Assembly (NCBI GenBank): GCA_004431415.1
Contig: QPMI01000369.1
Coordinates: 1 to 39,928, forward strand
DNA: 39,928 bases
Reading direction: 5' to 3'
Source of the DNA: Cyanophora paradoxa CCMP329
Lineage: Eukaryota > Plantae > Glaucophyta
In this document: in pieces, positions 22,803-39,928 of the stretch
Layout: every line of letters begins with the position of its first letter
Position numbering within the stretch: position 1 is the first letter of the stretch
Notes under the pieces: generated by a model
Seen by the model: the letters and a program-made list of their open reading frames with translations, nothing else
Databases searched by the model: none
Told to the model about the DNA's origin: nothing
Program-made: the position numbers and the translations under genes

Positions 22803-25800
22803 CTAGCCAGAGTGTCCGCGGGGAGGCGCATTACTCTCCTTAGGGGGCCACGCAGGGCCCGGCCGGCCAGCTTGCTGGTGGGCTGGGCCCGCGGCCGCGG
22901 CGGCCGCAGTGTACATTCCCACACTTGTAGCCCGGACCTGCGTTTTGAGTACGTGTCCAAATGCGGCGAGCGTACATGTACATGAACAGCTTGAGCTTAA
23001 GATGCATATAATCTTTCCAGCCTATGTACTTTTCGCATTCACATGACAACACATCCTGCCTCGTTCTCAAGGCTAGTGTCGCTTGGCACCCCAGAACTTA
23101 CAGTTTGAGGCGGAGCAGCGGCGAGATTGCCAGGGGCCCTCCTCTGCACAAACAAGAGTAAATAAGAGTGCAGGCTGAAGTGAAACTGAAAAAAACACAC
23201 CACCACCTCGCTGATCTCGACTTCATCATCTTCATCGCTTATCTCAATGATCTCCTTGTTGGGAACCTTGGAGGAAGGCTGGCTCACTAGCTTCGAGGGC
23301 TGCTGAGGCTGCTGAGCTGATTGCTTCTGCTTTGCCTGAGGCCTATTATCCTTGCCAGGCTCATGGACTCTAGATGCTGGAGAAGGATACTTTGCCAATG
23401 CCTCATCGATTGCTTTCTGTAGTGCAGCAAGCTGAACTGGCCGGAGGTTTGCCTGCAGAATCTTCAGTGTTGCTTCTTTCCCCTGCAATAATACAGATTG
23501 CCGTTAATTGTGATAAACTGAGGCGATGAAGTAAATGCTTACGATCACAACCGCTATCTGTGCGACGAGTTCTGTTGCAGCTGTCCGTACTTGTGTTTGT
23601 GGGTGATTGAAAAGTTTCCCGCAGTACTCCAGAATGCTGAGATGAATTCCTGTACATTGAATGATGAGATGAAAGTGATTGCAAACAGCCAACCACTGCC
23701 TGGTACCTTCCTTTGGACTTTCAGAGCTGGCACCCTCCGAAACAATCTGCTTCAGTGTGTCGACCTGGAAGCACATCAGTTCAAACGGTCAGATGGGAAG
23801 GGCAAGATGGCATGACCTGTCCAATGCACATCCGACTTGACCCAGCTCCTGTTTGCCCATCCAGCATGATTTTGACCACATAATTCTGACCGACATTCTT
23901 TGCTCGACTGAGGGCCGCAAGAGCCTGCAATAAAAAGGCATGTGAGAACCATCCTGCCAATGAGAGCCCTTACTGACCCATATTGATGCTTCTCTCAGTC
24001 GAGCATTGGTATCACCAACATGGTCTGTTATGCTTGGGTTCATTTCGACAGCACCAAGCCACATGTGGAGAGCCTTGCTGTCCCAGGAAGAGAGTTGCTC
24101 TGCACTCAGTTGCAGGGCCCTCAGGGATGCAAAGTAAACCTGTGAGGAACAGTCTTTCAGACAGAATGCACAAGATGGAAAGTAACGCTAACCCTAACCC
24201 TAACCTGAGGGTTCTTGTCTGAAAGCCCAATCCTCAAAAGAGCTGCTGTAGCGACACAAGACCGCGAGAAACCTTTGGTTACGAGTTGCATGGAGGAACT
24301 TCTGTGGACATCGGAGGAGCGGTCATCATGCCCCCCTTTTCGTGCTCTTGTCCCTCCAGCTGGACTCTGAAGAGTAACACTTCCAGTGCGAAGAAGGCCC
24401 GTTGCAGTTTGAAGGGCTTTCTCTCTGGTCGCCCATGATCCTGCAGTGATGCCTTCTGCAACCTGAGGGTTGCTGTAAGAGGTTGGAGTTGCCACATCAT
24501 TGCAGACAAAATCATACCTCCACGCCGAAAACCTCGGATATGATGGATATCTCGTCTGCATGCTCACCACCTGTCTTTCGAGGAGACGAGCTGGTTTGAT
24601 TTGAAGTCTGCTCTTGAAGGCTGAGCTGCTCAAGGGCTGATGCTTGCATCGGACGAATCGGCCTGTCTTCTGGTACTGTTACAGAACTTGCTGCATGCAG
24701 GGCTGGGGCTGCTAGAGGCTCAAGAGGTGGGTCGGGTTCACGGCGCTGTCCAGCACTCATTGGTGTTGGAACATGAAGACCTACTGGGGGCTGAGCTGGT
24801 GCACGGATGGGGCTGTCAACGGGGTCAAACTCTCTGCAAAATCAATTAGGAATCATGTCCCTGCGAAACTACTCAAGAGTGGGACAATGCACTCACGCAT
24901 CACTTATGCGGTCGGCCAGATGTGCAAGCCTGTCCCCAATGAGCTTTGCTGTGTGGTAGTCCTCCACCCTGAGGGCAGCGTGAAGTTCTCTAAGCAAATG
25001 GTCGACCTCATCTTCAATGGCATGAAGCATTTCTTGCTTCCCCTTCAACTGGCTTGCAGCTCCAAAGTCTTCATTGCTTACTGCAGCAACCTTTGCACGC
25101 TCCAATGCAGTCATGCGATCGGCAATCAACACCTTGTGAAATGTGTAAGATGCCTGCAAACGTGATTGATAGCATATACAAACCTTGATCTTGTGCGAGG
25201 CAGGATTCTGCACATGGCCAGCATCGGACGTGGAACCGGGCTGACGACCATTCGAAACACCAGCCTCTCGGCTTTTCAGGAGGGCACCTTGCATGACACG
25301 ATCGACTTCTGACTTGCACTTGCTGGCTTCCTCAAAGTTCTCCTCGTTCAGCGCTGCCAGCTTGCGCTCCTCCAACGTCTGAATCATTTGGGACGTCATC
25401 GTTAGAAAGAATGAAGGCAGAAAAATTGAACACGGATGGCACCTGTACAGCTGCAAGTGCTGCTGCAAACCAGTCAACAATGATTCGAAGACGGGCTGCC
25501 TCCGTATAATCCTCTGCATCAGTAGCTGCAATCTTCAAGTCAACAACTTTGTCGCGCTGCTGCATTAACTGCATAATGCTATCTGTTGCGGCGAATTGAG
25601 GCGTCGAAAAATCTGCTCCTGCCTCCCGAGTTGAAATTACATCATGCTGCAAGCTTGCAGACAAGTTGCCCTTGCGCGCGGAGGCAAGTGCTGCATCCTG
25701 GGCCAAGACACTTTGTAGAATGCCCATTTCCGCCAACACTGCGTCGGCTTCCGATTCGAACTCTGTGTCCCTGGCCTTTGTCCTCGACTTCGAGCCGTGA

Positions 25801-26357
25801 GACATGACAGGCGAGCCAACAGCATGGAGAGATTGAAGCCCAACTGCCGAGCCGAAATATGTCAAAGATACACGAGAGTGAGAATGAAAAAGAGAATATT
25901 AGATACTTTGTTCGCAGGGATTCAAGGCATCTTGAAAAGCGCCAGCGAAGACAAATTTGATGTACGACACGTCCAGAGGAGCCGGAAGGGACAGGCGTCC
26001 AGTGTTGTTCGACGAGGCGGTGAACTGAATAGAGCCCACGAGAGCGAACGTGGCCCCCGCCCACCCCGCAACTTCGCGCTGTGCATCCCCGATGAAGATG
26101 TCTATTACTGTTGGTGCTCGATGATCGGCGGCGACAAGCTGGATCTCCCGGACATTGGCTCGTGGTCTGAGCTCAATTACAAGCTCCACAGGAAACGGAG
26201 GAAACCTGTGCATGACTCAACGCCGTGTGTCACCCAGCACCACCCATAGCGCTGACCTTTGGCTGCACCACCCAGCGCGCCCCGTAGTGAGCTGAGAGGC
26301 GGGTGCATCTCGATCCTCGCTAGAAACGTGTACGACAATGAACGGGTGAGGGGCCAT
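22803..26357 (-). CDS. CEP104: CEP104/FAP256-like centrosomal/ciliary-tip protein (jelly-roll domain + UvrB/C-like coiled-coil motifs + TOG), multi-exon
   Basis: MAPHPFIVVHVSSEDRDAPASQL..GWCSQRFPPFPVELVIEL..VREIQL..IDIFIG..YIKFVF..N..Q.VGLQSL follows the CEP104 N-terminal domain. Repeated K..A...EDY/F..A motifs; TOG-like segments (SWATREKAL, DTNARLRE, HPQTQVRTAA). Putative stop 22803-22805. Confidence 0.75.
24188..24205 (-). repeat. short telomere-like (TTAGGG) tract at an intron donor
   Basis: + strand ctaaccctaaccctaacc; the minus strand reads CAG|GTTAGGGTTAGGGTTAGCG. Confidence 0.6.
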
Positions 26358-26648
26358 AGAGCTGCGACGATGCACTTTAGCTACGCGTCGCCCTGCGAGC
26401 CGCCAACGGTAAAAAAGGGACTCACATATGATGGTTTCCTCAAAACAAGCGCCAGCCGCGCGCGCCCAAAAACTTAGCTACGCGTCCACCGAGCAGTTGC
26501 TTTCATCATGCACGCTGCTAAACGCACGCTGAAGCCTAGGCAGCTATAGATTGTATTATAAATGGCACGTACAGCGCACACTGCGAGATGGCGCCCGGCG
26601 GGGGGGGAAGAGGCCTGACCCGGGTACGCTCGGAAAGGAGAGATTTTG
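26358..26648. promoter_or_regulatory. compact bidirectional promoter region between CEP104-like and ChlD
   Basis: Divergent ATGs ~290 bp apart; direct repeat TTAGCTACGCGTC at 26377-26389 and 26474-26486; TATTATAAAT near 26555. Confidence 0.5.
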
Positions 26649-29600
26649 ATGGAGCACGCGGCCGCCTTCACGGCGGGACCCCCGCCGCAGCTCGGCGGGC
26701 AGCGTGGACAGCGTGTAGCGGCGCGCATCGCTCCGGCCCAGCCGGAGATCCGCAGCTCGGCGCCCGCCGACCCGGCCTCGCGGCAGCACGTCGGCTTCCG
26801 CCGGACGAATGCGCTCGATGCGAAGTTCCTGGCACGTAGCCAGCCGCGGCCGCTCTTCCAGGCGCACCGCGCTCAGCTCCCGAATCACAACATGGGCTTC
26901 GCCGTCGCCCAGGCTGTGAGCGCGCCGAAGGCGCCCTCTCCGCCTCCCCAGAACCCGGCATCGGACCCTCTTAGCAGCCGCAATCAGCGAAGCATCTATC
27001 CCCTGTCCGCCGTTGTCGGCCAGGATTCTATCAAGCTCGGTGCGCGCTCGCGCGCGTCCAGCTGCACGTCCTGGCTGCCGCTGCCGCTGACGTGCATCCG
27101 CTCGTTCCGTCCGCTATCGCAGCGCTCATTCTTGCGGCGATCGATCCGGCGCTGGGCGGCGTCGTTATCGCGGGCAAGCGCGGCACGGCGAAGTCGGTGA
27201 TGGCGAGGGCGATCCACTCGGTGCTGCCGCCCATCGAGGTGGTGAAGGACACCACGTGCAACTGCGACCCGCGTGCCCCGGGCGACTGGGACACCTTCAC
27301 CCTCCGCCAGTACTTCCCCGACGGCTTCCCGGACGCCCCCAAGCCCGCCGCTGCCGCCGCCGCCGCCCCCGCCACCCCGTCTGCCTCCACGAGCGCCGCG
27401 CCGGCCAAGCCGGCCGACCTCTCCGCCGACCTCCGCGAGCAGTTCATCTCCGTCTGGGTCCGCCCGCCCCGCGCCCATCGCCCCGCTCCACGCCGAGCGC
27501 TCACGCGGCGCACGCGGCGCAGAACTCGACGGAGAGCGCGCCACAGGTGGCCGCAGAGGATGCCACCGGCGCCGGCGACGCGGCGGATGCGGCCCCAGCG
27601 AGCACCCTTAGCGGCGTGGAGGTCCCGACGGCGGTCATCCCGGCGCCCTTCGCGATGGTACCGCTGGGCGTGACGGAGGACCGCCTGCTCGGCTCGGTCG
27701 ACGTCGAGCAGTCCATCCGCAAAGGTGCACCCGCCCCCTCTGCCTCCCCAGCTCCGCCAACGCCGACTCGGGCCGGCAGGCGAGACCGTCTTCCTCCCCG
27801 GCCTGCTCGCCGAGTGCAATCGGGTGCGCGAGCGGCGTTGCGCCGCGGGGCGGGGCGGGGCGGGGCGGCTGAGGGCAGGGCAGGGGGTGCTGTACGTGGA
27901 CGACATCAACCTGCTCGACGAGAGCCTCTCCAACCTCCTCCTCGCCGCCATGTCCGCCCCGCCCCGCCCCGCCCCGACCCGCCTGCGCCCCGCCCCGGCC
28001 GACGCGGGGCGGGGCAGCTCGGAGGGGCGGAACCTGGTGGAGCGCGAGGGCGTCTCGTTCCAGCACCCGTGCCGGCCGGTGCTGATCGCGACGTTCAACC
28101 CGGAGAGCGGGCCGCTGCGGCCGCACCTCATGGACCGCTTCGCCATCGCGCTCTCGGCGGACGGCCTGATGTCGATCGAGGACCGCATCGACATCGTCCA
28201 GCGCGTCACCCACTTCACCGACAATTCCGCTGGTTTCGTCGCCGAGGTGCCCCCCCTCCCCTCCCGAGGGGGCCGCGGGCGGGGCGGGGGCGGGGGCGGG
28301 GGCCGAGGTGCGGGGCGGGGCGCAGTACGAGCAGGAGGTGGAGGACCTGCGGACGACGATTGTCATCGCGCGCGAGTTCCTCAAGGAGGTCACCATCTCC
28401 AGCAAGCAGATCGAGTACCTCACCACCGAGGCGGCCCGCGCCGGCTGCGAGGGCCACCGCGGCGAGGTCCCCGCGCATCCGCCTCGCCTCCCGCCCGCGC
28501 CGCCGGGGCCCGAGCCTGGGGCGCAGATCTTTGCGGTGCGCGTGGCGAAGGCGCACGCCGCGCTCGGCGGCCGCGACCGCTGCAACGCCGACGACCTCGC
28601 CGTCCGCCCCGCCCCGCCCCGCACCGCCCCGCCCCGCCCCCTGCCGCCCACGCCGGCGCGGCGGGGCGCAGGTCGCCGTGAAGCTCGTCATCCTGCCCCG
28701 CGCCACAGTCGTGGACGCACAGCCCCCGCCGCCTCCTCCCCCTCCCCCGCCGCCGCCGCCGCCGCAGGTGCGGGGGCCCCTTCTCGCCCTCTCCCCCGCC
28801 CCCCGGGCGTGGCCGACGCGGGGCGGGGCGCCGGGCAGGCGTCGGAGCAGGCGGAGGACGAGAAGAACGAGGACGAGAACGAGCAGGAGGACGACGACAG
28901 TGCGCCGGGCCCGCTTGCCGCGCCGGCCGCGGGGCGCGCCGCCGAGGCGGGGGCGGGGGCGCAGAGGAGGAGGAGGACGAGGAGGAGCAGGAGCAGCAGG
29001 CGTCGCCGGAGGTGCCGGAGGAGTTCATCTTCGACCCGGAGGGCGTCGTGATGGACAACGAGATGCTCGCCTTCGCCCAGGCCTCCCGCGGCCGCAACTC
29101 CGCCAAGTCCGGCAAGCAGGGCATCATCTTCTCCATGGACCGCGGCCGGCCCGCCCCGCCCCGCCCCGCCCCGCCCCGCCCCGCCCTGGGCCCCGCGCGA
29201 CCCGCCCCCGCAGGTACATCAAGCCGGTGCTGCCGCGCGGCAAGTTCGGGCGCATCGCGATCGACGCGACGCTGCGGGCGGCGGCGCCGTTCCAAAAAGC
29301 GCGGCGGCTGCGGAACCCGGGGCGCAAGGTGGTGATTGACAACATCGACGTGCGGCACAAGAAGCTGGCGCGGCGGGCCGGCGCGCTGGTCATCTTCGTG
29401 GTGGACGCCTCGGGCTCGATGGCCCTCAACCGCATGCAGGCCGCCAAGGGCGCCGCCCTCCGCCTCCTCACCGACGCCTACCAGTCCCGCGACCAGGTCG
29501 CCATCGTCGTCGTCCAGAAGGCCCGCCCCCGCCCCCGCCTCCGCCCCCGCCCCGCCGCCGCCTGACGGGGGCGGGGCAGGACGCTGCGGAGCTGCTGCTG

Positions 29601-30489
29601 CCGCCCACGCGGTCGATCACCTCGGCGCGGCGCCGGCTGGAGCGCCTCCCCTGCGGCGGCGGCTCGCCCCTCGCCCACGGCCTCTCCGTCGCCGCCCGCT
29701 GCGGCATCAACGCCATGTCCACCTCCGGTCCGCCCGCCCGCCGCCCGCCCCGCGCCCCGCGCCCGCGCCGCCCGGGGCCGCCTCTGATGGCGCTGGGCGG
29801 GATCAGACGTGGGGCGGGTGGCGATCGTGTGCATCACGGACGGGCGGGCGAACGTCTCGCTGGCGACCTCCACGGGGCCCCCACCGGCGACGACCCCGAG
29901 GCGGCGGCGGCGGCGGCGGCCGAGGCGGCGGCCGCGGCGGCGGCCGGCGGCGCCAAGGGCGGGGCGGGGAAGAAGGCGAGCGCGGCGGACAAGGCGGCGC
30001 TGAAGGAGGAGGTGCTCAACATGGCGGCCAAGATCCGCGCCGCCAACATCGGCTTCCTCTGCATCGACACCGAGAACAAGGCCCGCCCCGCCCCGCCCCG
30101 CCCCCTCTGCTTTCCCCTGTTTTCTTTCTGTCTCTCCTCTCCCCCTCGCGCCTGCTCTACCCCGCGGCGAGCCCGGCCCTGAGCCTGCGGACTTACACGG
30201 GCGCGAGAGCGCACCGGGGCGACTCAAGCGGCGGGCCCTTCTCCCGTGGGCCCCCCGCGATCTCCGCTCCCACATCCCTCCCCCGCTTTCCCCGCTTCCC
30301 CGCCTCGCCCCGCCCCGTGCTCGCCTCTCTCGCCGGGGCGGCTGACGCCGGGCGCAGTGGATCTCGACGGGGCTGGCGAAGGAGATCGCGAAGAAGGCGG
30401 GGGGGCGGTACTACCAGCTGCCGAACGCGACGGACAAGGCGATCGCCGGCATCGCCTCCTCCGCCATTGCCGACATGAAGTCCCTGTGA
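26649..30489 (+). CDS. CHLD: magnesium chelatase subunit D, plastid-targeted, 14 introns
   Basis: [62 protein letters not shown], poly-Pro and acidic linker, v[44 protein letters not shown]. Transit peptide MEHAAAF; stop TGA 30487-30489. Confidence 0.97.
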
Positions 30490-30591
30490 CCGCCCCAAGC
30501 CAGCCGCCCCGCCCCGCCCTGCCTCTCCCCAGCCCCCCGAGCCCCTCCTCTAGATCTACGTCCTTCCCTCGCTAGTCGCATTGGTATTCGA

Positions 30592-30891: not shown

Positions 30892-33800
30892 ATGTATGCC
30901 CGGTTCGATCCGTCCGGTCGGACGGAGGCGGCAACGGGCACGATGTACGGCAGCGGCCAGCAGTGGGGTCAGTTCGGCAGCGGGCAGTGGGGCTCGAACA
31001 GCAATGCCGAGCCCGTCACCACGCCGCTCTACACGGCGTCGTATTCGCAAAGCTATGTAGCGGCGGCTGGCCCGTCTACCGCGTCGCCCACTCCTGCTCG
31101 GCCGTCCGCCGCGCGCTCGCCGGAAATCTCTCGCAAGTCAGCTGGCAGCGTCGGCTTTTTCGATCTCAAGTCGCGCAGTAACGAGAACGACGGCGCTGAG
31201 GACTACAGCCGCCTGCGCAAGTGCACAGTCTGCGCTCGAACTTGCTCGGAACTTGTCTAACACTCAGCTGCACAGGTTGATCGACAAGCGGTGAGCTGCA
31301 CAGGTTGATCGACAACGCTATGTTCGATATGCATAGGCCGTGACAAGCGGCGCCGGCCGTGATGTCGTTCGCTCCATCGCAATCGCTGAGCGGCTGCCGC
31401 CTCGCTTTGCCGTCGCGCAGCTTCGCGCCATACAAGTTGAACGTGCGGCGGGCGGAAGTCTTCTTGCGGGTGTTTTTTCGCTTTTTTTGCTTTGCTGCAG
31501 AGCCCTTGGCGAAGGCTGACAGCGAGCTCAGGTCCAGAAGAAGCAGCTGCAGGCGATGCAGCTCTACCGGGAGCTCGTCATCTACGCGGCCTACATCACG
31601 CTCTTCTTCTGGCTCGCGATGACCATCCTGCCGCTTCACATCTCGAACGACCAGGACGACTCGCTCGTCGGCGCCGGCGCCTACTTCAACGTGCCCCGCA
31701 TCGGCGCGACGCCTCCGGAGGACAGCCCCTGGGACTCCGTCAACAACGCCGACGTCCGCCCCCGCCCGCCCCCCCGCCCGCCGTCCCCGCCCGCCCAACG
31801 GGGCGGCGCAGGACGTGTGGGGCTATCTGAAGAAGTTCGTGGCGGGCCCCCTGACGGGGCCCGGCGAGGGCCCCGCCCAGTTCCGCTGGTTCCGCCAGCA
31901 GATTGGCGCCCTCCGCGTCCGTCAGGTGCGCCCCGCGCCGCCCCGCGCAGGCCGGCGGGGTGGCCGGCGAGGGGGCGGGGCAGGTACGGGGCAACGGGGG
32001 CCGCTGCGAGGCGCACGGGCGGGAGTACAGCTGCTTCGGCGGCTTCACCGACGCCGGGGAGGAGCGGGCGCCCTTCGGCCCCGGCGGCCGCTTCCAGTGG
32101 CAGGGCGGCCTCACCGAGGTCCGGCCCTCCCCCAAGGTCCGTCCCCGCCCCGCCTCGCGCCCGCCCCGCCACCGCGGGCGGGGCCGACGGGGCGGGGCAG
32201 TTCATGCGGGACGACTCGTACGCCTTCAGCTACGGCACCGGGGGGTACGTCGTCGACATCAGCGCCGCCGGGGGGCCGGAGGCCGTGGTGGCGGCCCTCT
32301 CGCAGCTCCAGGCCGACAAGTTCATCGTCCGCCCGCCCCGCCCGTCCCGCCTCCGCGTGGGGCCTGAGGGCGGCGGGGCGGGCGGGGGGCAGGACGAGGC
32401 GACGCGGGTGCTGGTGGTGTCGGTGAACCTGTACAACCCGCACACCGACTCCTACATCGTCGCCGAGCTCATGGCCGAGAGTGCGCGCCGCCCAACCCCC
32501 GGCCCCCGCGAGGGCGGCCCCGCCGGCGGCCCCCGACGCCCCACCCGACGCGCCGCCGCAGTGCCGCCGACGGGGAAGCTGCTCACGAGCGTCCGCGTTG
32601 AGACCCTCAACATCCAAGCCGTGCGCCCCGCCGCGCTCTTCCCCGCCCGCCGCGCACTCCCCTCCGACGCGCGGGCGCGGGCAGTTCGACTCGGCGGTGG
32701 TGTCGGTGCTGGGGGTGGTCTTCGTGGTGTTCACGCTGGGGTACGTGCTGCACGAGTTCAAGCAGGCGCGGGACCGGGGCCTGGTGGGCTACCTCAACGA
32801 CTCGTGGAACTTCTGGGACATCACCAACCTCATCATCATCGCCTGGATGCTCGTCCCCACCCTCCGTCCGCCCCCGCCCCGCCCCGCCCCCAGGCCCCCC
32901 GCCTTAGCCGGGGCCGGCAGGCTACCGCTCCTTCTGCATGTCGATGCTGGCGGCGCTCGAGCGCCCCGGGGCCCCCTCCGTCCGCCCCGCCCCCCGCCCG
33001 CCGGCGCCGAGGCCTGCGCGGGGGCGAGCTGGGTGGGGGCAGGAGTACCTGGCGCTGGACGGGGGCACGCGGATGCTGCGGGACGTGAAGCAGCTCGCCG
33101 CCTTCGCCATCCTCCTCTGCTGCGTCCGCATCTTCAAGGCCCGTCCCCGCCCGTCGCCCCGCCCCCCGACCCCGGCGCTCACGGAGCCGGGGCGGCAGTT
33201 CTTCGAGCTGAACCCGCGGCTGTCGGTGCTGACGAACACGGTGGGGCGGGCCGTCCCCGATCTCGCCGCCTACCTCGTCATCTTCGTCATCATCTTCGCG
33301 TCCGCTCCCCGCCGCAGCCCGCCCGCACCCGGCCCCTCACGCCGCCGCCGCCGCCCGCGCGCGCAGGGGGTACGCCTTCTTCGCGTGGATCGTGTTCGGG
33401 TACCGGATCGAGGCGTTCCGCTCGTTCTACTCGTCGTTCGCGCGGCTCTTCGGGAACCTCGGGGGCGGCCTCGACATCGGCGAGCTCACGGACGCCGCGC
33501 CCCGCGCCGGCGTCTTCTTCTACTTCTCCTTCATCGTCCTCGTCTCCCTCATCCTCATCGTCCGCGCCCCCGCCCCGCGCGCCGGCGGGTGCGCGGGGCG
33601 GCTGAGCGGGGGGCGGGCAGAACATCTTCATCGCGATCGTGGGGAAGTACTACACGGAGGCGGGTGCGGAGGCGATCCGGAGCGAGGAGGAGTTCGCGAA
33701 GGAGCTGAGCGAGGAGGACCGGACGTCGCCCTACCACAAGCTGCGCCACCTCCGCGTCACCGTCCTCCTCGAGAACGAGGGCGACGAGCCCGACCGCGAC

Positions 33801-36800
33801 GCCCACGTCCGCCCCGCCCCGCCCCCGCCGCCCCCCGCGCCCCCCACGCCCCTAACCCCGGCGCCCCCGCAGGGCCGCCCCATCGGCGGCCGCCGCCTGC
33901 CGCAGGGCGCCCTCATGCGCCTCTTCATCAGCCGCCGCAAGGCGGGGCCCAGCCGCGGGCCAGGCACCCCGGGCACTGTCGACCCCGGCGTGCGCCCTGC
34001 CCCCGCGCCCCCTCGACCCCGCGCGCCCGGATCGCCGACGGCTGCCTGGCAGCTCTTCGCGTCGAATGCCGCGATGCCGGTCGTCCAGGCCTCGTCCGCC
34101 CCGCCCCGCCCCGCCCCGCCCCGCCCCGCCCCGCCCCGCCCAGCGCGGCCTCACGGGGCGGGGGGCGGGGGCAGGGCGGCGGGGCACCCGATGCACGTGC
34201 GGTTCCTGCCGGAGGTGCTGGGGATTGGGGACGAGTGCGAGCTGGCGGGGGAGGGCGGCGGGGCGGCCGAGGCGCGCCTCCGGGTGGAGCGGGTGAGCGC
34301 GGGGACGGACGGGAGCTGGTACGTGGACCTCTCGGCGGTGCGGGAGTCGGTGGTCTCGCAGGGGGCCCACGTGCGCATCCCCTGGGGCGCCACCCTCCGC
34401 GCCCTCGCCTCCTTCTACATCCAGGACCCCGAGCTCGTCATGAGGCCCGCCCCGCCCGCCCCGCCCACGCCGCCCACGCCCCCTGCCCCGCTGAGCGGTC
34501 TGCGCGCAGCCGGCGGACGAAGAAGCTCTTCGAGGAGTTCGGGGTGGAAGCGGTGGCGCCGCTGGTGCCCGACGAGGCGCTCGAGGCGCAGATCGTGGAG
34601 CTGGCGGCGCGCAACGCGCACCTCGCGCGGCAGGCGGACGAGACGCTGAAGCGCAAGTCGTTCCGCCTCGACGAGCTGCTGCGCGTCATCCGCGACCTCG
34701 ACACCCTCGCCTCCCGCCACGAGAACCGCGCCTTCGCCGAGGGCACCACCGCCCAGGCACCCGCCCCCCGCCCCCCGCCCCGCGCGGGGCGCTGAGGCGG
34801 GGGCGGGGCAGCTGGTGCGGGAGGCGGTGGAGATCGACGCGCTGTACCGGCAGGCGATGGCGCTGGGGACGGGCCAGGCCGAGCGCCTCCTCGACGACCT
34901 CCGCCGCGACGCCGAGGCCGCCGCCGCCGCCCGCCGCCCCGCCGCCCCCGGCGCCCTACTCCCCGCCGCCATCCGTCCCGCCCCGTCGGGCGCCAAGGCC
35001 CGCTCCCCCCTCCCCCTCCCCGCGGGGGCGGGGCGGGAGGCCGAGGCGGGGCGGGCGGGGCGCAGGGGGCGGAGGAGAAGCGGGAGCGGGAGGTGCAGCT
35101 GGACGTCTACCGCGCCCTCTACGCCCGCCTCGTCGCCGCCGCCTCCCAGGCCCGCCCCGCCCCGCCCCGCCCCGCCCCGGCGCGGCACGGCACGGCGCGA
35201 GAGCCGCGCGCGCAGTTCGACCGGCGGGTGCACGAGCTGTGGCTGGGGGTGAAGCACGGGTCGGGGAAGGGGGACGGGTCGGTGCTGCCGGAGACGGTGC
35301 TCGACTCGCTGCGCTTCGATGAGGTCGTCGACATCGTCCGCGCCCAGGCCCTCGTCTACGCCCCCGCCGACGACGCGCGCCCGCCCCCCGCCCCCCGCGC
35401 CTTGCGCCCCGGCCCGCCGTCGCGGGGTCTGACGCGGGGCGGGCAGTGCACGGAGGTCGACTTCAAGCGCGAGGCCGTCCGCTTCCTCGCCGGCTTCCCC
35501 CTCGCCTGCTTCGAGCCCCTCGTCCAGGCCCGCCCCCGCCCGCCTCGCCCAGCCGCTCCCCGCCCGAGGCCCCCGCAGGAGCAGGAGCGCGTGCGCCCGT
35601 ACCTGCCGCGGCCCTTCGACGTCGATCGCATCGCCGACTCCGCCAAGGACCCCGCCCGCGTCCTCGGTCCGCCCCCGGCCCCCGTCCCGCCCCGCCCCTC
35701 GGCCGGCGCTGACGGGACCTTGGTGGCGGCAGGGGGGGTGCGGCTGAGCAAGGGGGCCCCCGCGGCGAGCAGCCTCTTCCAGTCGATGCGCAGCAGCTCC
35801 GCCGCCGTCCACGCCCGCTTCTCCTCCCCGCGTCCGCCCGCCCCACCCGCCTCCCGCCGCCCCGAGCGGCGCCTCACGGGGCGGCAGAGGGCGACGTGGC
35901 GTCGCAGGCGCTGCAGAAGCTCCCCGACACGATCACGGACGCGCGCCCCGCCGCCCGCCCGCCCGCCCCGCCGCCGCCGGCCGCTGACGCGGGGGCGCAG
36001 CTGATGGCGGTGGTGATCCACGACGGCTGGGCCTTCAACAAGATCAAGGACGGCTGGCGGTCCGCAAAGCCCCCCCGTCCTGCACCGGTGCGGGCGGCTG
36101 ACGCGTACGGGGCCCCGGGCGGCGCAGGCACGGCCCCGGGCGGACGAAGCCGCACCACGAGTGCCTTGTGCCGTGGCGGGACCTGGAGCACGTGGCCGGG
36201 GGCGGCATGGACGACGACCGCAACCAGGCGCTCAACGTGCTGCGCGCCGTCGTGTGCCTGGGGTACGACTTCGTGGAGCCGGAGGAGCAGGTCACCGTGG
36301 ACGAGGTGCTCGAGATCATCCCCGGCCAGGAGGAGTTCCACCGCGACGGCCGCATCCAGCCCGTCCGCCCCGCCCCCGCCCGCCTGCGCCCTGCGGGGTC
36401 CGACGGCTGATGGCTGACGGGCAGCACTACTGGCTGATGCGGGTGCGGGAGGGGGAGGAGCTGCCGCCCGCCATGCGCGAGCTCGTCGACCTCCTCGCCA
36501 AGGCACGCCTCCCCGGCCCCGCCCCGGCCCCGCCCCCGCCTGACCGCCCCGCAGAACGCCCACGACGTCCGCCCCCGCGCCCCGCGCCCCGCTCCCCTCC
36601 CGGGGAACCCACGCGCGGGGCCGCGGTAGGTGTGGGCGAAGAAGCGGAAGGACGAGGGGTACACGTACGGGGAGGTGACGGACGCGGACCGGAAGCAGCA
36701 CTCGCAGCTCATCCCCTACGAGTGCATGTCCGACGCCGAGCGCTCCTACGACAAGGGCACCGCCGAGGGCCCGCCCCCGCCCCCGCCCCCGCCCCGCGCT

Positions 36801-36950
36801 CCACGTGCCGCCCCCGCTGAGGCGGCCCCCGCAGTGACGATCCGGATGGTGATGGCGTGCAAGTGGCGCATCGTGCCGCAGCGGCGGCAGCGCTCGTGGG
36901 CGCAGCGCGCCACCATCGCCCTCGGCATCCCCGCCTCCTGGTCCCTATGA
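30892..36950 (+). CDS. PKD2/TRPP-like cation channel with two C-terminal ryanodine-receptor (RyR) repeat domains (PKDRR-like), ~30 exons; 5' exons uncertain
   Basis: TRPP features: RELVIYAAYITLFF, IGALRVRQVR..C, YGTGGYVVD, FIDEATRVLVVSVNLYNP, YLNDSWNFWDITNL, LSVLTNTVGRAVPDL, FRSF..SF..LF, LINIFIAIVGKYY. C-term: VIHDGWAFNKIKDGWRHG...HECLVPW and LLAKNAHDVWAKKRKDEGYTYGEVTD...HSQLIPYECMSDAERSYD. Stop TGA 36948-36950. Confidence 0.88.
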
Positions 36951-37161
36951 CCACCCCGCGCCCCGCCCCCTGTGCTGCGGTTGGCAGATTTAGCTTAGTA
37001 GATGCACTAGTACCGAGCATTTTGCGCGAGCGCGACATGTACGCTCGACTCATCGTCAGATGCGGGCATGCAGCTAGCGCTAGCGCTTAAGCTTGCTCGG
37101 GACGCCGTGACGGGGGGATAGAGCTGACGGGGGCTACGCGATTAAGAGATACGACAGCGAA

Positions 37162-37971
37162 ATGGCCGCCCTTCCCCTTGCGCCGGCGATCTCGGGCCTT
37201 GTTCCTGCTGGACCAAGCGGCATCCAGATCCCAGTTCGCACGCCGGCGTGGTTCAGCCCTGAGCGCGCGGTGCGTCAAGACCCATCGGCGCCCTCGCACA
37301 TGGTGCGATCGTCCTCACGCTTTCCCGCGAGCAGGAAGAGAGCGTTGCGGAGCCTAAGCGGCCGCAGCCTGCGACCCGGCCAGCGCGGAGCTTCGTTTGC
37401 TCGGCGTGCAACTGCACGGGCCACACGCAGCGGACGTTCGTAGGACGCGCGCAGGTCTACCACATCACAGGTGTGCTGGCCGCCACAGCAAGCTCTAAAT
37501 ATGTTTCCTCATGCGGCTGCAGATGTGATCGATGCACTTGCGCAAGCGAACGTCAATACGGAGGCGGTGGCCGCTGTGGCGGGCGGCTCGGTGGGCGTGA
37601 TGGGCACTCTGGTGGCCGTCGAGAACGCCAAGAAGCGATCATTCGAGGACTCACTCTGTGCGACGCCCGCCGCCGCCGCCGCCGTCTTCGTTCGCCTCTG
37701 ACCGCCTCCCGGGCGCCCAGGCCTCTACTGCGGCGGCTTTGGCGAGGCGCGTCCGATCCCTCGCGCGCCGGCGCCCCTCCATGTGCTCGCTGACGGCTGC
37801 GCGCAGCTCGCGTGCGGGATGTGCGTGGGGGCCGGCTGCGACTCGTGCCAGAGCAACGGGCGGGTGCCCTGCTTCAACTGCCAGGGCACGGGCCACGCGT
37901 TCCTCACCGACGGGCCCTCGCCCCGCGCCGGCGGCCTCCTCGGCTCCGAGCTCGACGCTCCCTACAGCTAG
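37162..37971 (+). CDS. ORANGE-like plastid DnaJ-type (CxxCxGxG) zinc-finger protein
   Basis: Spliced: TM AVAAVAGGSVGVMGTLVAVE, then CLYCGGFGELACGMCVGAGCDSCQSNGRVPCFNCQGTG. This resembles the OR motif GGAVGVISALMVVE..CxYCxGxGYLACxxC. Stop TAG 37969-37971. Confidence 0.72.
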
Positions 37972-38108
37972 CCCGCCCCCTCTTCCCATGTCGGATCGAA
38001 ACCCCCGCCTCCCTCCTCCCCGACGACCCTTAGCGGTAGTAGGTAGACGTTAATAGGTGCACAGACTGGGGGACGGCGGCTGGGGGTGGCGGGGTGGGCG
38101 GTGGCGGG

Positions 38109-39928
38109 TCAGGGGCGGGGCCGGCCGTCCATGCGGGCCATGCGGGCGAGGGCGGCGAGGCTCTCGTCCCCACCGAGGCCGTCCTCCTGCGCCCCGCTCG
38201 AGCCCGTTCGAGGCCGGCGGGGGCGGGGCGGGGCGCACGCGGGCGGCCTGGAGCTCCTCCTCGGCCTCGCCGGCGAGGCCGTCCCGCAGGAGCCAGCTCA
38301 CCAGCGTCCGCCGCAGCTTCGCCCCCGGCGGCGCCCCCCGCTCCGCCGCCCCCGCGCGGAGGCGGGCGGCGACGGCGCGCGCCTCGGCGTGGCGCCCGCA
38401 GCGGCAGAGCGCCTCCACCAGGCTCGTGTACGCGTTCTCCTGCACCCCGGCCGCCCCCCACTGCCCCCGACCCGCCCCACCCGCCCCTCAGCGCCGGGGC
38501 AACGCGCAAGGGGTGCGGGGAGGGGGCGGGCCTGCCGGGGCGGCGGGGTCGTCGCCGGTGAGCTCGGCGAAGAGGGCGAGGGCGGCCTCGGGGCGCCCTC
38601 CGTGCCCGCACGCGTCCACCACCACGCTCGCCGTCGCCCCGTCCGCCCGCACCCCTGCCCCGCCCGCCCCTCAGCGCCACAGCAGGGCGGGGGCGGGGCT
38701 GAGGCGGGGCGGGCCGCGGCGCTGGAGGCGGCGGAGGGCGGCGAGGGCGGCGTCGAGGTCGCCGGCGCGCGAGTGCGCCTCCACGAGCCCGTTCATCGTC
38801 GCCGCGTCCGGCCGCGCCCCCGCCCGCTCCAGCAGCCCCGCCGCCCGCTCCGCCCCCGCCGCGTCCCCCGCTTCGCGTACCTGCCGCCCCCGTCGCCGTC
38901 GCCGTCGCCGTCGCGCGGGCCGCGCGGCGGGCGGCGGGGCGCACGCGTCGAGGAGGGTGTTGAAGGGGAGGGCGGGGAGGCGGGCGCCCCGGGCGGCCGC
39001 CTGCGCCAGGGCCCGCTCCGCGGCCTCGGGGTCGCCCCGGCGCGCGAGGTCGCCGGCGCGGGCGGCGGCGGTGGCGGCCTCCGCGTCCCCGAAGCCTCGC
39101 GCCGCCGCCTCCTCCTCCAGCTCGGCCGCGAGGGCGCGGGAGCCGCGGGCGAGGGCGGCGCGCAGCAGGCGCCCGTAGAGGAAGCCGTCCACCGCCGCGT
39201 CGGGGGCGCCCCGCACGAGGTTCGCCGCGGGGGCGACGCGCCCCGCCGCGAGGAGCGCCTCCACGAGGGGCGTCAGGGTGCGCGTGCTCTCGGGGACGCC
39301 CAGCGCCGTCATCTCGGCCCGCAGCGCCAGCGCCTCCTCGACGTCCCCGGCCCGCGCCGCCCCGCCGATCAGCGCCGCGAACGCCGCCCCCTCCACCTCG
39401 TGCCCTGCACCCCGCATCTCCTCCCGCACCTGCCGCCCCGCCCCCGTTGGTCGCCGTCGCCCTTGCGGGAGGCTGCGGGGGCGGGCATGGGGCGGGGCGG
39501 GCCTGCAGAGCGCGGGGCAGGCCGCCGGGGCGCGCCGCGTGGCCGGCCATGATCGCCTGCGAGGAAAGATAGAGAGGTCAGCGGGCGCGGGCTGGAGGGC
39601 GGGGAGGGGGAGCACGTGGAAGGTCTCGGGGCCCTCGGGGAGCCCCGCGGCGGCCATCTCCGCCCGCGCCGCCGCCACCGCCGCCTCGTCCCCCGCCTCC
39701 GCGTGCTGTCCCCGCGCGTCGGGCGCAGCCGCACGGGAGGGAGCGGCGGGGCGGCGGGGCGCACGCCGGCGAGGAGGAGGCGGAAGAAGCGGGCGCCCGG
39801 GCGGGCGCAGCGCTCGCGCATGCGGGCGCGGAGGGCGGCGAGTTCGGGGGCCATGCCGCGCGCCGCATAGAGGCCGGCGAGGAGGCCCCACGCCTCCTCG
39901 TTCGGGCCCTGCATCGCCCCAGCGCCTC
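38109..39928 (-). CDS. P-type pentatricopeptide repeat (PPR) protein, 5'-partial
   Basis: ~35-aa repeats: AFAALIGGAARAGDVEEALALRAEM, PFNTLLDAYAKRGD, PDAATMNGLVEAHSRAGDLDAA, NAYTSLVEALCRCGRHAEA. Stop TGA 38109-38111. Confidence 0.88.

Follow-up and report, generated by a model that had tools for sequence, protein, structure and literature searches.

An intact and expressed PKDRR-family channel gene with tandem RyR repeats in the glaucophyte Cyanophora paradoxa

The PKDRR gene and its surroundings

The window analysed here is a stretch of 39,928 nucleotides from Cyanophora paradoxa CCMP329, and it holds an intact and expressed gene that is a glaucophyte member of the PKDRR family: one PKD channel and two C-terminal RyR domains are encoded in one protein. 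The gene begins with an ATG at 30892 and ends with a stop codon at 36950 on the forward strand; its 32 exons and 31 introns yield a coding sequence of 4035 nt and a protein of 1344 aa. A search with exon 31 matched it to the EukProt protein tig00001537_g9306.t1 of Cyanophora paradoxa (g9306 in the following). This public match agrees with a sequence-only reading of the same DNA, which had assumed a primary-plastid flagellate as the host. That reading had placed the channel with its repeats at 35896-36950; both quoted repeats are present in the sequence, but the gene spans 30892-36950 and repeat 1 begins near 35600. The features, all on the forward strand (+), are the following:

30892..36950 (+), whole gene tig00001537_g9306; RNA joints, contig offsets and public model
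30892-31220, 31276-31290, 31421-31469 (+), exons 1-3, cytoplasmic N-terminus; RNA joint and contig offsets
31574..31630 (+), transmembrane helix S1; hydropathy
31631..32620 (+), extracellular TOP/polycystin domain, aa 165-385, spliced; PF20519 (E 4.7e-16) and PKD2 alignment
32694..33647 (+), PKD channel domain S2-S6, spliced; PF08016 and PDB polycystin-2 (E 4e-38)
33461..33469 (+), selectivity filter Gly-Gly-Gly; alignment with human PKD2, in which residues 641-643 are Leu-Gly-Asp
33750..34385 (+), beta-barrel resembling the pyruvate kinase B domain, aa 639-780, spliced; AF2, Foldseek and VIA
34386..35308 (+), helical bundle or coiled region, longer in glaucophyte copies; AF2 secondary structure
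35309..35590 (+), 'RFDE' helical block, aa 1004-1056; common to all PKDRR lineages
35600..36272 (+), RyR repeat 1, aa 1060-1200; Pfam and residue alignment
35735..35919 (+), insert of ~45 residues in repeat 1, exons 25-26; alignment, RNA joints and low pLDDT
36425..36872 (+), RyR repeat 2, aa 1231-1319, including the 12-nt exon 36555-36566; Pfam and residue alignment

Transcript evidence was drawn from three RNA-like runs of three studies and one DNA-like run, aligned over 31010-36995; the class of each run is an assigned guess, and a short-read contig is not equivalent to a single molecule. All along the gene, RNA-like contigs skip the short introns and thereby join channel, linker and RyR exons. 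The spliced joints include 35831>35888, 35940>36001, 36058>36127 and 36362>36425, which are absent from the DNA-like run X13 (31010-36995). One RNA-like contig of 4133 nt (X5/11) runs from exon 1 through channel and linker into the RyR exons; its offset to the 32-exon model is constant at 14 checkpoints, and it exceeds the coding sequence by 31 nt at the 5' end and by 67 nt at the 3' end. For joints 3' of 36502, the length of this contig and the match to the public model form the basis. The public model g9306.t1 agrees with ours except for two introns: it predicts one (aa 72-96, window 31105-31179) that RNA contigs read through, and it keeps a 66-nt intron (35150-35215) whose removal is required by the offsets of contig X5/11. 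The joints and contig X5/11 bear out the earlier proposal that a TRPP channel and tandem RyR repeats share a transcript, and both quoted repeats fall into a single reading frame once the 32-exon model is spliced. A separate gene for the RyR exons is contradicted by the RNA-like contigs that join them to channel and linker.

Intron size ranges from 51 to 130 nt, with 21 GT and 10 GC donors; the 5' half of the introns is C-rich and the 3' half G-rich, and GC at third codon positions is 0.965. Two micro-exons of 15 nt (31276-31290) and 12 nt (36555-36566) are present. The latter encodes the conserved His of RyR repeat 2, and ~25 nt around the former are repeated at ~31297-31317.

Directly upstream (26646-30490) lies a ChlD-like Mg-chelatase subunit gene, read from open reading frames with an AAA match, whose N-terminal extension resembles a plastid transit peptide. 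Downstream, a small spliced gene (37160-37971) carries a DnaJ-type CxxCxGxG zinc-finger-like motif, with no Pfam match for its last exon, and a PPR protein gene occupies 38100-39900 on the minus strand. Approximately 3 kb at 22950-25900 have roughly 50% GC within a window of 70-80% GC. Since the ChlD-like and PPR neighbors share the intron style of g9306, the gene is native to Cyanophora; contamination was considered for the window and ruled out by these neighbors and by DNA contigs that run across introns.

A polycystin-type pore with a structured tail

What was observed for g9306 is the gene with its transcript, the domains and folds of the protein, the conservation of its residues, and the distribution and tree of the family. 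Pfam assigned two RyR domains (3.7e-32), PKD_channel (4.8e-31) and Polycystin_dom (4.7e-16) to g9306.t1; exon by exon, PF08016 was matched by three exons, PF20519 weakly, and PF02026 by exon 31 (E 1.8e-10), so that both families sought by the sequence-only reading, PF02026 and PF08016, were found. The closest solved structures are polycystin-2 (E 4e-38), PKD2L1 and RyRs. The protein has the TRPP layout of six transmembrane helices, the first two of which flank a TOP domain, and Cys251 and Cys260 of this domain align with a Cys pair of human PKD2. It thus shares with animal polycystin-2 and PKD2L1 the S1-TOP-S2-S6 order and the TOP Cys pair at the E value given above, whereas it differs in lacking the filter Asp and a detectable EF-hand (Pfam and sequence inspection), and in carrying a barrel, an RFDE block and an RyR clamp as its tail instead.

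The filter residues L641-G642-D643 of PKD2 are replaced by G-G-G in g9306, with an Asp retained two positions past the filter. At the position of the PKD2 filter Asp, three Cyanophora paralogs have Gly and the fourth has Leu; the filters read G-G-D/N in Gloeochaete copies, L-G-A in oomycete PKDRR A and A-G-D/E in PKDRR B. A resemblance to the filter motif of RyR/ITPR channels was judged superficial. MIR, RIH and SPRY domains and an ITPR-type pore gave no Pfam match in g9306.t1.

Between pore and repeats, the sequence-only reading had seen a long linker, which is present, but it had missed the structured domains within, namely the barrel and the RFDE block. Folded alone, the barrel (aa 639-780) reached an AF2 pLDDT of 83.7, and the top 50 Foldseek matches were pyruvate kinases only (best E 5.5e-6). 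VIA aligned it to the pyruvate kinase (PK) B domain with Z 8.7 and rmsd 3.0 over 93 residues, and with Z 10.5 in a larger model of the tail; MOSC-type proteins ranked next. In the Atlas, PK clusters were matched at TM 0.46-0.49. The barrel is recognised through its fold only; neither Pfam nor ESM features nor a sequence search of the PDB picked it up. A small PK-B profile scored 20, 30 and 20 against the glaucophyte, oomycete A and oomycete B barrels (shuffled maxima 12-15), with weak alignments that keep the same register in all three, and gave no signal in Diphylleia tails. Support for the barrel is therefore good in g9306, and its presence in oomycetes is likely. It shares the beta-barrel fold of the PK B (lid) domain over 93-94 of ~97 residues at an rmsd of ~3 Å, whereas identity is 8-17%, long loops are inserted and the catalytic A domain is lacking. 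The shared fold alone says nothing of the function of the barrel in the channel. For the helical bundle that follows, structure comparison gave generic helical matches only. The barrel, together with the RFDE block, a helical segment of ~55 residues that starts with R-F/Y-D-E and directly precedes repeat 1 in all PKDRR lineages, constitutes new anatomy for a formerly unannotated linker; within an incomplete coverage of the literature, no paper was found on the barrel or on PKDRR outside oomycetes.

The tandem repeats themselves, with paired Trp and basic residues, match a clamp similar to RyR Repeat12. AlphaFold2 modeled the tail at pLDDT 74.9, and the repeat pair matched RyR3 Repeat12 with a Foldseek E of 2e-9 and a TM of 0.79 of the target (VIA Z 16.6). 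In RyR1 RY12, ADP or ATP is bound between W882 and W996, in contact with these residues and with R886, R897, H904, R1000, W1005 and R1020; the module favours two ADP over ATP and has been proposed as an ATP:ADP sensor (PMC13642953). Five of these eight residues are identical in g9306 (W1142, W1262, R1157, H1162, R1266), two are conservative (K1146, Y1271) and one is changed, with Gln at the position of R1020. The site residues are H1139, W1142, K1146, R1157, H1162 and D1182 in repeat 1, and H1259, W1262, R1266, Y1271, H1284 and D1301 in repeat 2. The likeness to RY12 thus extends to the clamp fold and most nucleotide-binding residues, whereas g9306 has a single repeat pair only and carries its clamp on a TRPP pore of ~1340 aa in place of a 5000-aa ER release channel.

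A second parallel comes from phage RyR-domain proteins (RyDEP), which bind or cleave 2'/3'cADPR via His, Trp, His and Asp (PMC13232231). By motif position, this His/Trp/His/Asp set is present in each repeat of g9306; the likeness is by motif only, and RyDEP differs in being small, soluble and homodimeric and in acting on cADPR by binding or cleavage. Across 26 PKDRR tails with 19% mean identity, the His, Trp and Asp site columns are invariant or nearly so. The insert in repeat 1 (35735-35919) is peculiar to the g9306 paralog. Another Cyanophora paralog, g22334 (P0184), has degenerate RyR repeats in which the His and Arg of repeat 2 are replaced, which makes it a natural negative control for ligand binding.

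Distribution and origin of the family

PKDRR proteins have been stated to occur in oomycetes only (PMC7399828, PMC4820453), and the supplements of PMC7399828 name neither a glaucophyte nor Diphylleia. In Cyanophora, three paralogs carry the repeats (g9306, g18323, g22334), while g24561 is a truncated model without them. The same architecture occurs in three proteins of Gloeochaete wittrockiana, in three of Diphylleia rotans (CRuMs), in oomycete A and B and in environmental sequences. The published oomycete-only range is thereby overturned, and the homology to oomycete PKDRR stands. This range is a lower bound and other lineages may hold PKDRR, because the word-index homology searches were insensitive: they returned 1, 4 and 5 matches and missed known members. 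A metagenome scan found 10 channel-like loci, none with RyR repeats. The three Diphylleia paralogs fall outside the glaucophyte clade, an indirect sign against prey contamination of the transcriptome.

RyR repeats also occur in other settings. Protein P0034 (L014:170-3694) is a CNG/HCN-like channel with Ion_trans, a cNMP-binding domain and two RyR repeats; these repeats fall together with those of the A type from oomycete PKDRR, which suggests that the clamp was recruited repeatedly onto channels. The environmental proteins P0002 and P0003 add other unusual architectures: four RyR repeats before Ion_trans, and GYF and RGS with four RyR repeats. A divergent, GC-rich, intronless PKDRR-B-like metagenome gene (P0188, L001:21-2618) may be non-oomycete. 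As RyR pairs are found on CNG-like and TrkA/RCK proteins too, the pair is a mobile module.

With oomycete PKDRR A and B, g9306 shares the PKD channel with two C-terminal RyR domains, a similar length (1170-1490 aa; PMC7399828, PMC4820453), the homologous RFDE block and probably the barrel, which upholds the sequence-only view of a PKDRR-type protein. It differs in its glaucophyte host, separate clade, G-G-G filter, longer helical linker, repeat 1 insert and 31 introns. HHalign gave the RFDE block 71-98% for all lineage pairs (89.5% to oomycete A, 95.9% to oomycete B), with scores of 26-65 against shuffled maxima of at most 17. Among 185 proteins, its HMM matched PKDRR proteins and fragments only, and no match was found in any repeat protein of the RyR, CNG-like or TrkA-linked kinds tested; 67 other repeat proteins lack even the four-letter RFDE motif, and two have it without an HMM match. 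A block common to the PKDRR lineages and absent from the other RyR-domain proteins tested points to one fusion.

Phylogenies were run with the oomycete proteins, as the earlier reading had suggested, and excluded fragments as well as redundant members of clusters. In the unrooted full-length tree (758 columns), glaucophytes (100/99), Diphylleia (100/100) and oomycete A+B (100/99) form separate clades, and the Cyanophora paralogs expanded inside the genus. AU tests reject a grouping of glaucophytes with oomycete B (p=0.0006) or A (p=0.0007). By filter and AU test, g9306 thus belongs to neither PKDRR A (L-G-A; p=0.0007) nor PKDRR B (A-G-D/E; p=0.0006), and its tail past the last repeat has ~25 residues versus <10 in PKDRR B; it belongs to a new glaucophyte subfamily of the known family. 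PKDRR monophyly reached only 53/82 in a channel tree with five long outgroups and was not recovered in the RyR-pair tree.

The family is probably very old, since it is found in glaucophytes and an unrelated flagellate beside oomycetes. The sequence-only reading had considered an older or more widely shared family; copies in both sampled glaucophyte genera and Diphylleia agree with it and, together with the lineage-specific clades and the AU rejections (p<0.001 against A or B), speak for old age, whereas a recent transfer out of one of the oomycete subfamilies is disfavoured. A serious possibility is an ancient transfer between eukaryotes, for instance among ancestors of glaucophytes, CRuMs and stramenopiles, in place of vertical inheritance reaching back almost to the last eukaryotic common ancestor. 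The range among named records is very patchy, Diphylleia feeds on algae, and glaucophytes group with Diphylleia against organismal expectation (81/80 in the channel tree, 92 in the RyR-pair tree); against such a transfer, each lineage forms its own clade with no nesting, the AU tests separate glaucophytes from A and B, and the viral scan found no PKDRR carrier. Independent fusions in glaucophytes and oomycetes, which mobile RyR pairs and the loosely resolved monophyly would allow, are very improbable given that two features lie between channel and repeats, the RFDE block and an in-register barrel signal, both of which are absent from the other RyR-domain proteins tested.

A nucleotide-modulated channel as the proposed function

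Conduction, ligand binding, coupling and location are what we infer for g9306. By homology to PKD2, the protein would form a tetrameric cation channel of the surface membrane with a modular cytoplasmic tail, in which S6 is followed by the PK-B-like barrel, the helical bundle, the RFDE block and the Repeat12-like clamp. Most likely, adenine nucleotides (ADP/ATP-Mg or of the ADP-ribose type) would be sandwiched by W1142 and W1262, and the clamp would close on them; RFDE block and barrel would relay this movement to S6, so that gating would track the energy state or a nucleotide signal. As the filter Asp is missing, probably mainly monovalent cations pass. We consider a nucleotide-modulated cation channel of this kind somewhat probable. 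A single fusion would predate the present copies in glaucophytes, CRuMs and oomycetes, with separate duplications in each lineage thereafter. Several points weigh against this explanation: a HEK293 assay of PKDRR B from P. infestans was negative, monophyly is weak (53/82), RyR pairs are mobile, the repeats of g22334 are degenerate, and the patchy distribution requires many losses. Only tentatively do we extend it to a PKDRR channel from near the last eukaryotic common ancestor that reads ADP/ATP or ADP-ribose-type signals, its polycystin pore being coupled via a co-opted pyruvate-kinase-lid barrel.

The repeats could instead serve as a scaffold for protein interaction or assembly, with gating by voltage, mechanics or partners. 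RyR domains do form intra- and inter-subunit contacts in RyR1 (PMC4820453), and one Cyanophora paralog has degenerate repeats; yet the near-invariance of the ligand-site His, Trp and Asp in the divergent PKDRR tails makes this reading unlikely.

Still more doubtful is the ciliary Ca2+ channel regulated through RyR repeats that the sequence-only reading had envisaged. Cyanophora and Diphylleia are flagellates, animal PKD2 is ciliary, and an Asp persists two positions beyond the filter. Nevertheless, all four Cyanophora paralogs lack the filter Asp (three have Gly, one has Leu), and no EF-hand was found in g9306. Bremia and Peronospora keep PKDRR A and B, although 55 of 78 flagellar orthogroups are gone from Bremia, as are many genes associated with calcium. 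In P. infestans, sporangia and hyphae have PKDRR B at their surface, and no zoospore structure gave a signal for it. The ciliary reading is weak because the filter Asp is lost, PKDRR A and B persist in Bremia and zoospore structures are negative.

Altogether, the family is now known from three distant eukaryotic groups, which contradicts the oomycete-only claim on which a proposal of PKDRR as a selective pesticide target rests. In combination with the 2026 reports of ADP and cADPR binding by RyR repeats, the nucleotide-modulated channel provides a direct and testable gating hypothesis, and Cyanophora is a culturable, non-pathogenic alga in which it can be tested. If it holds true, PKDRR would offer a small natural model for the role of RyR repeats and might act in protists as a receptor for signals of the cADPR kind.
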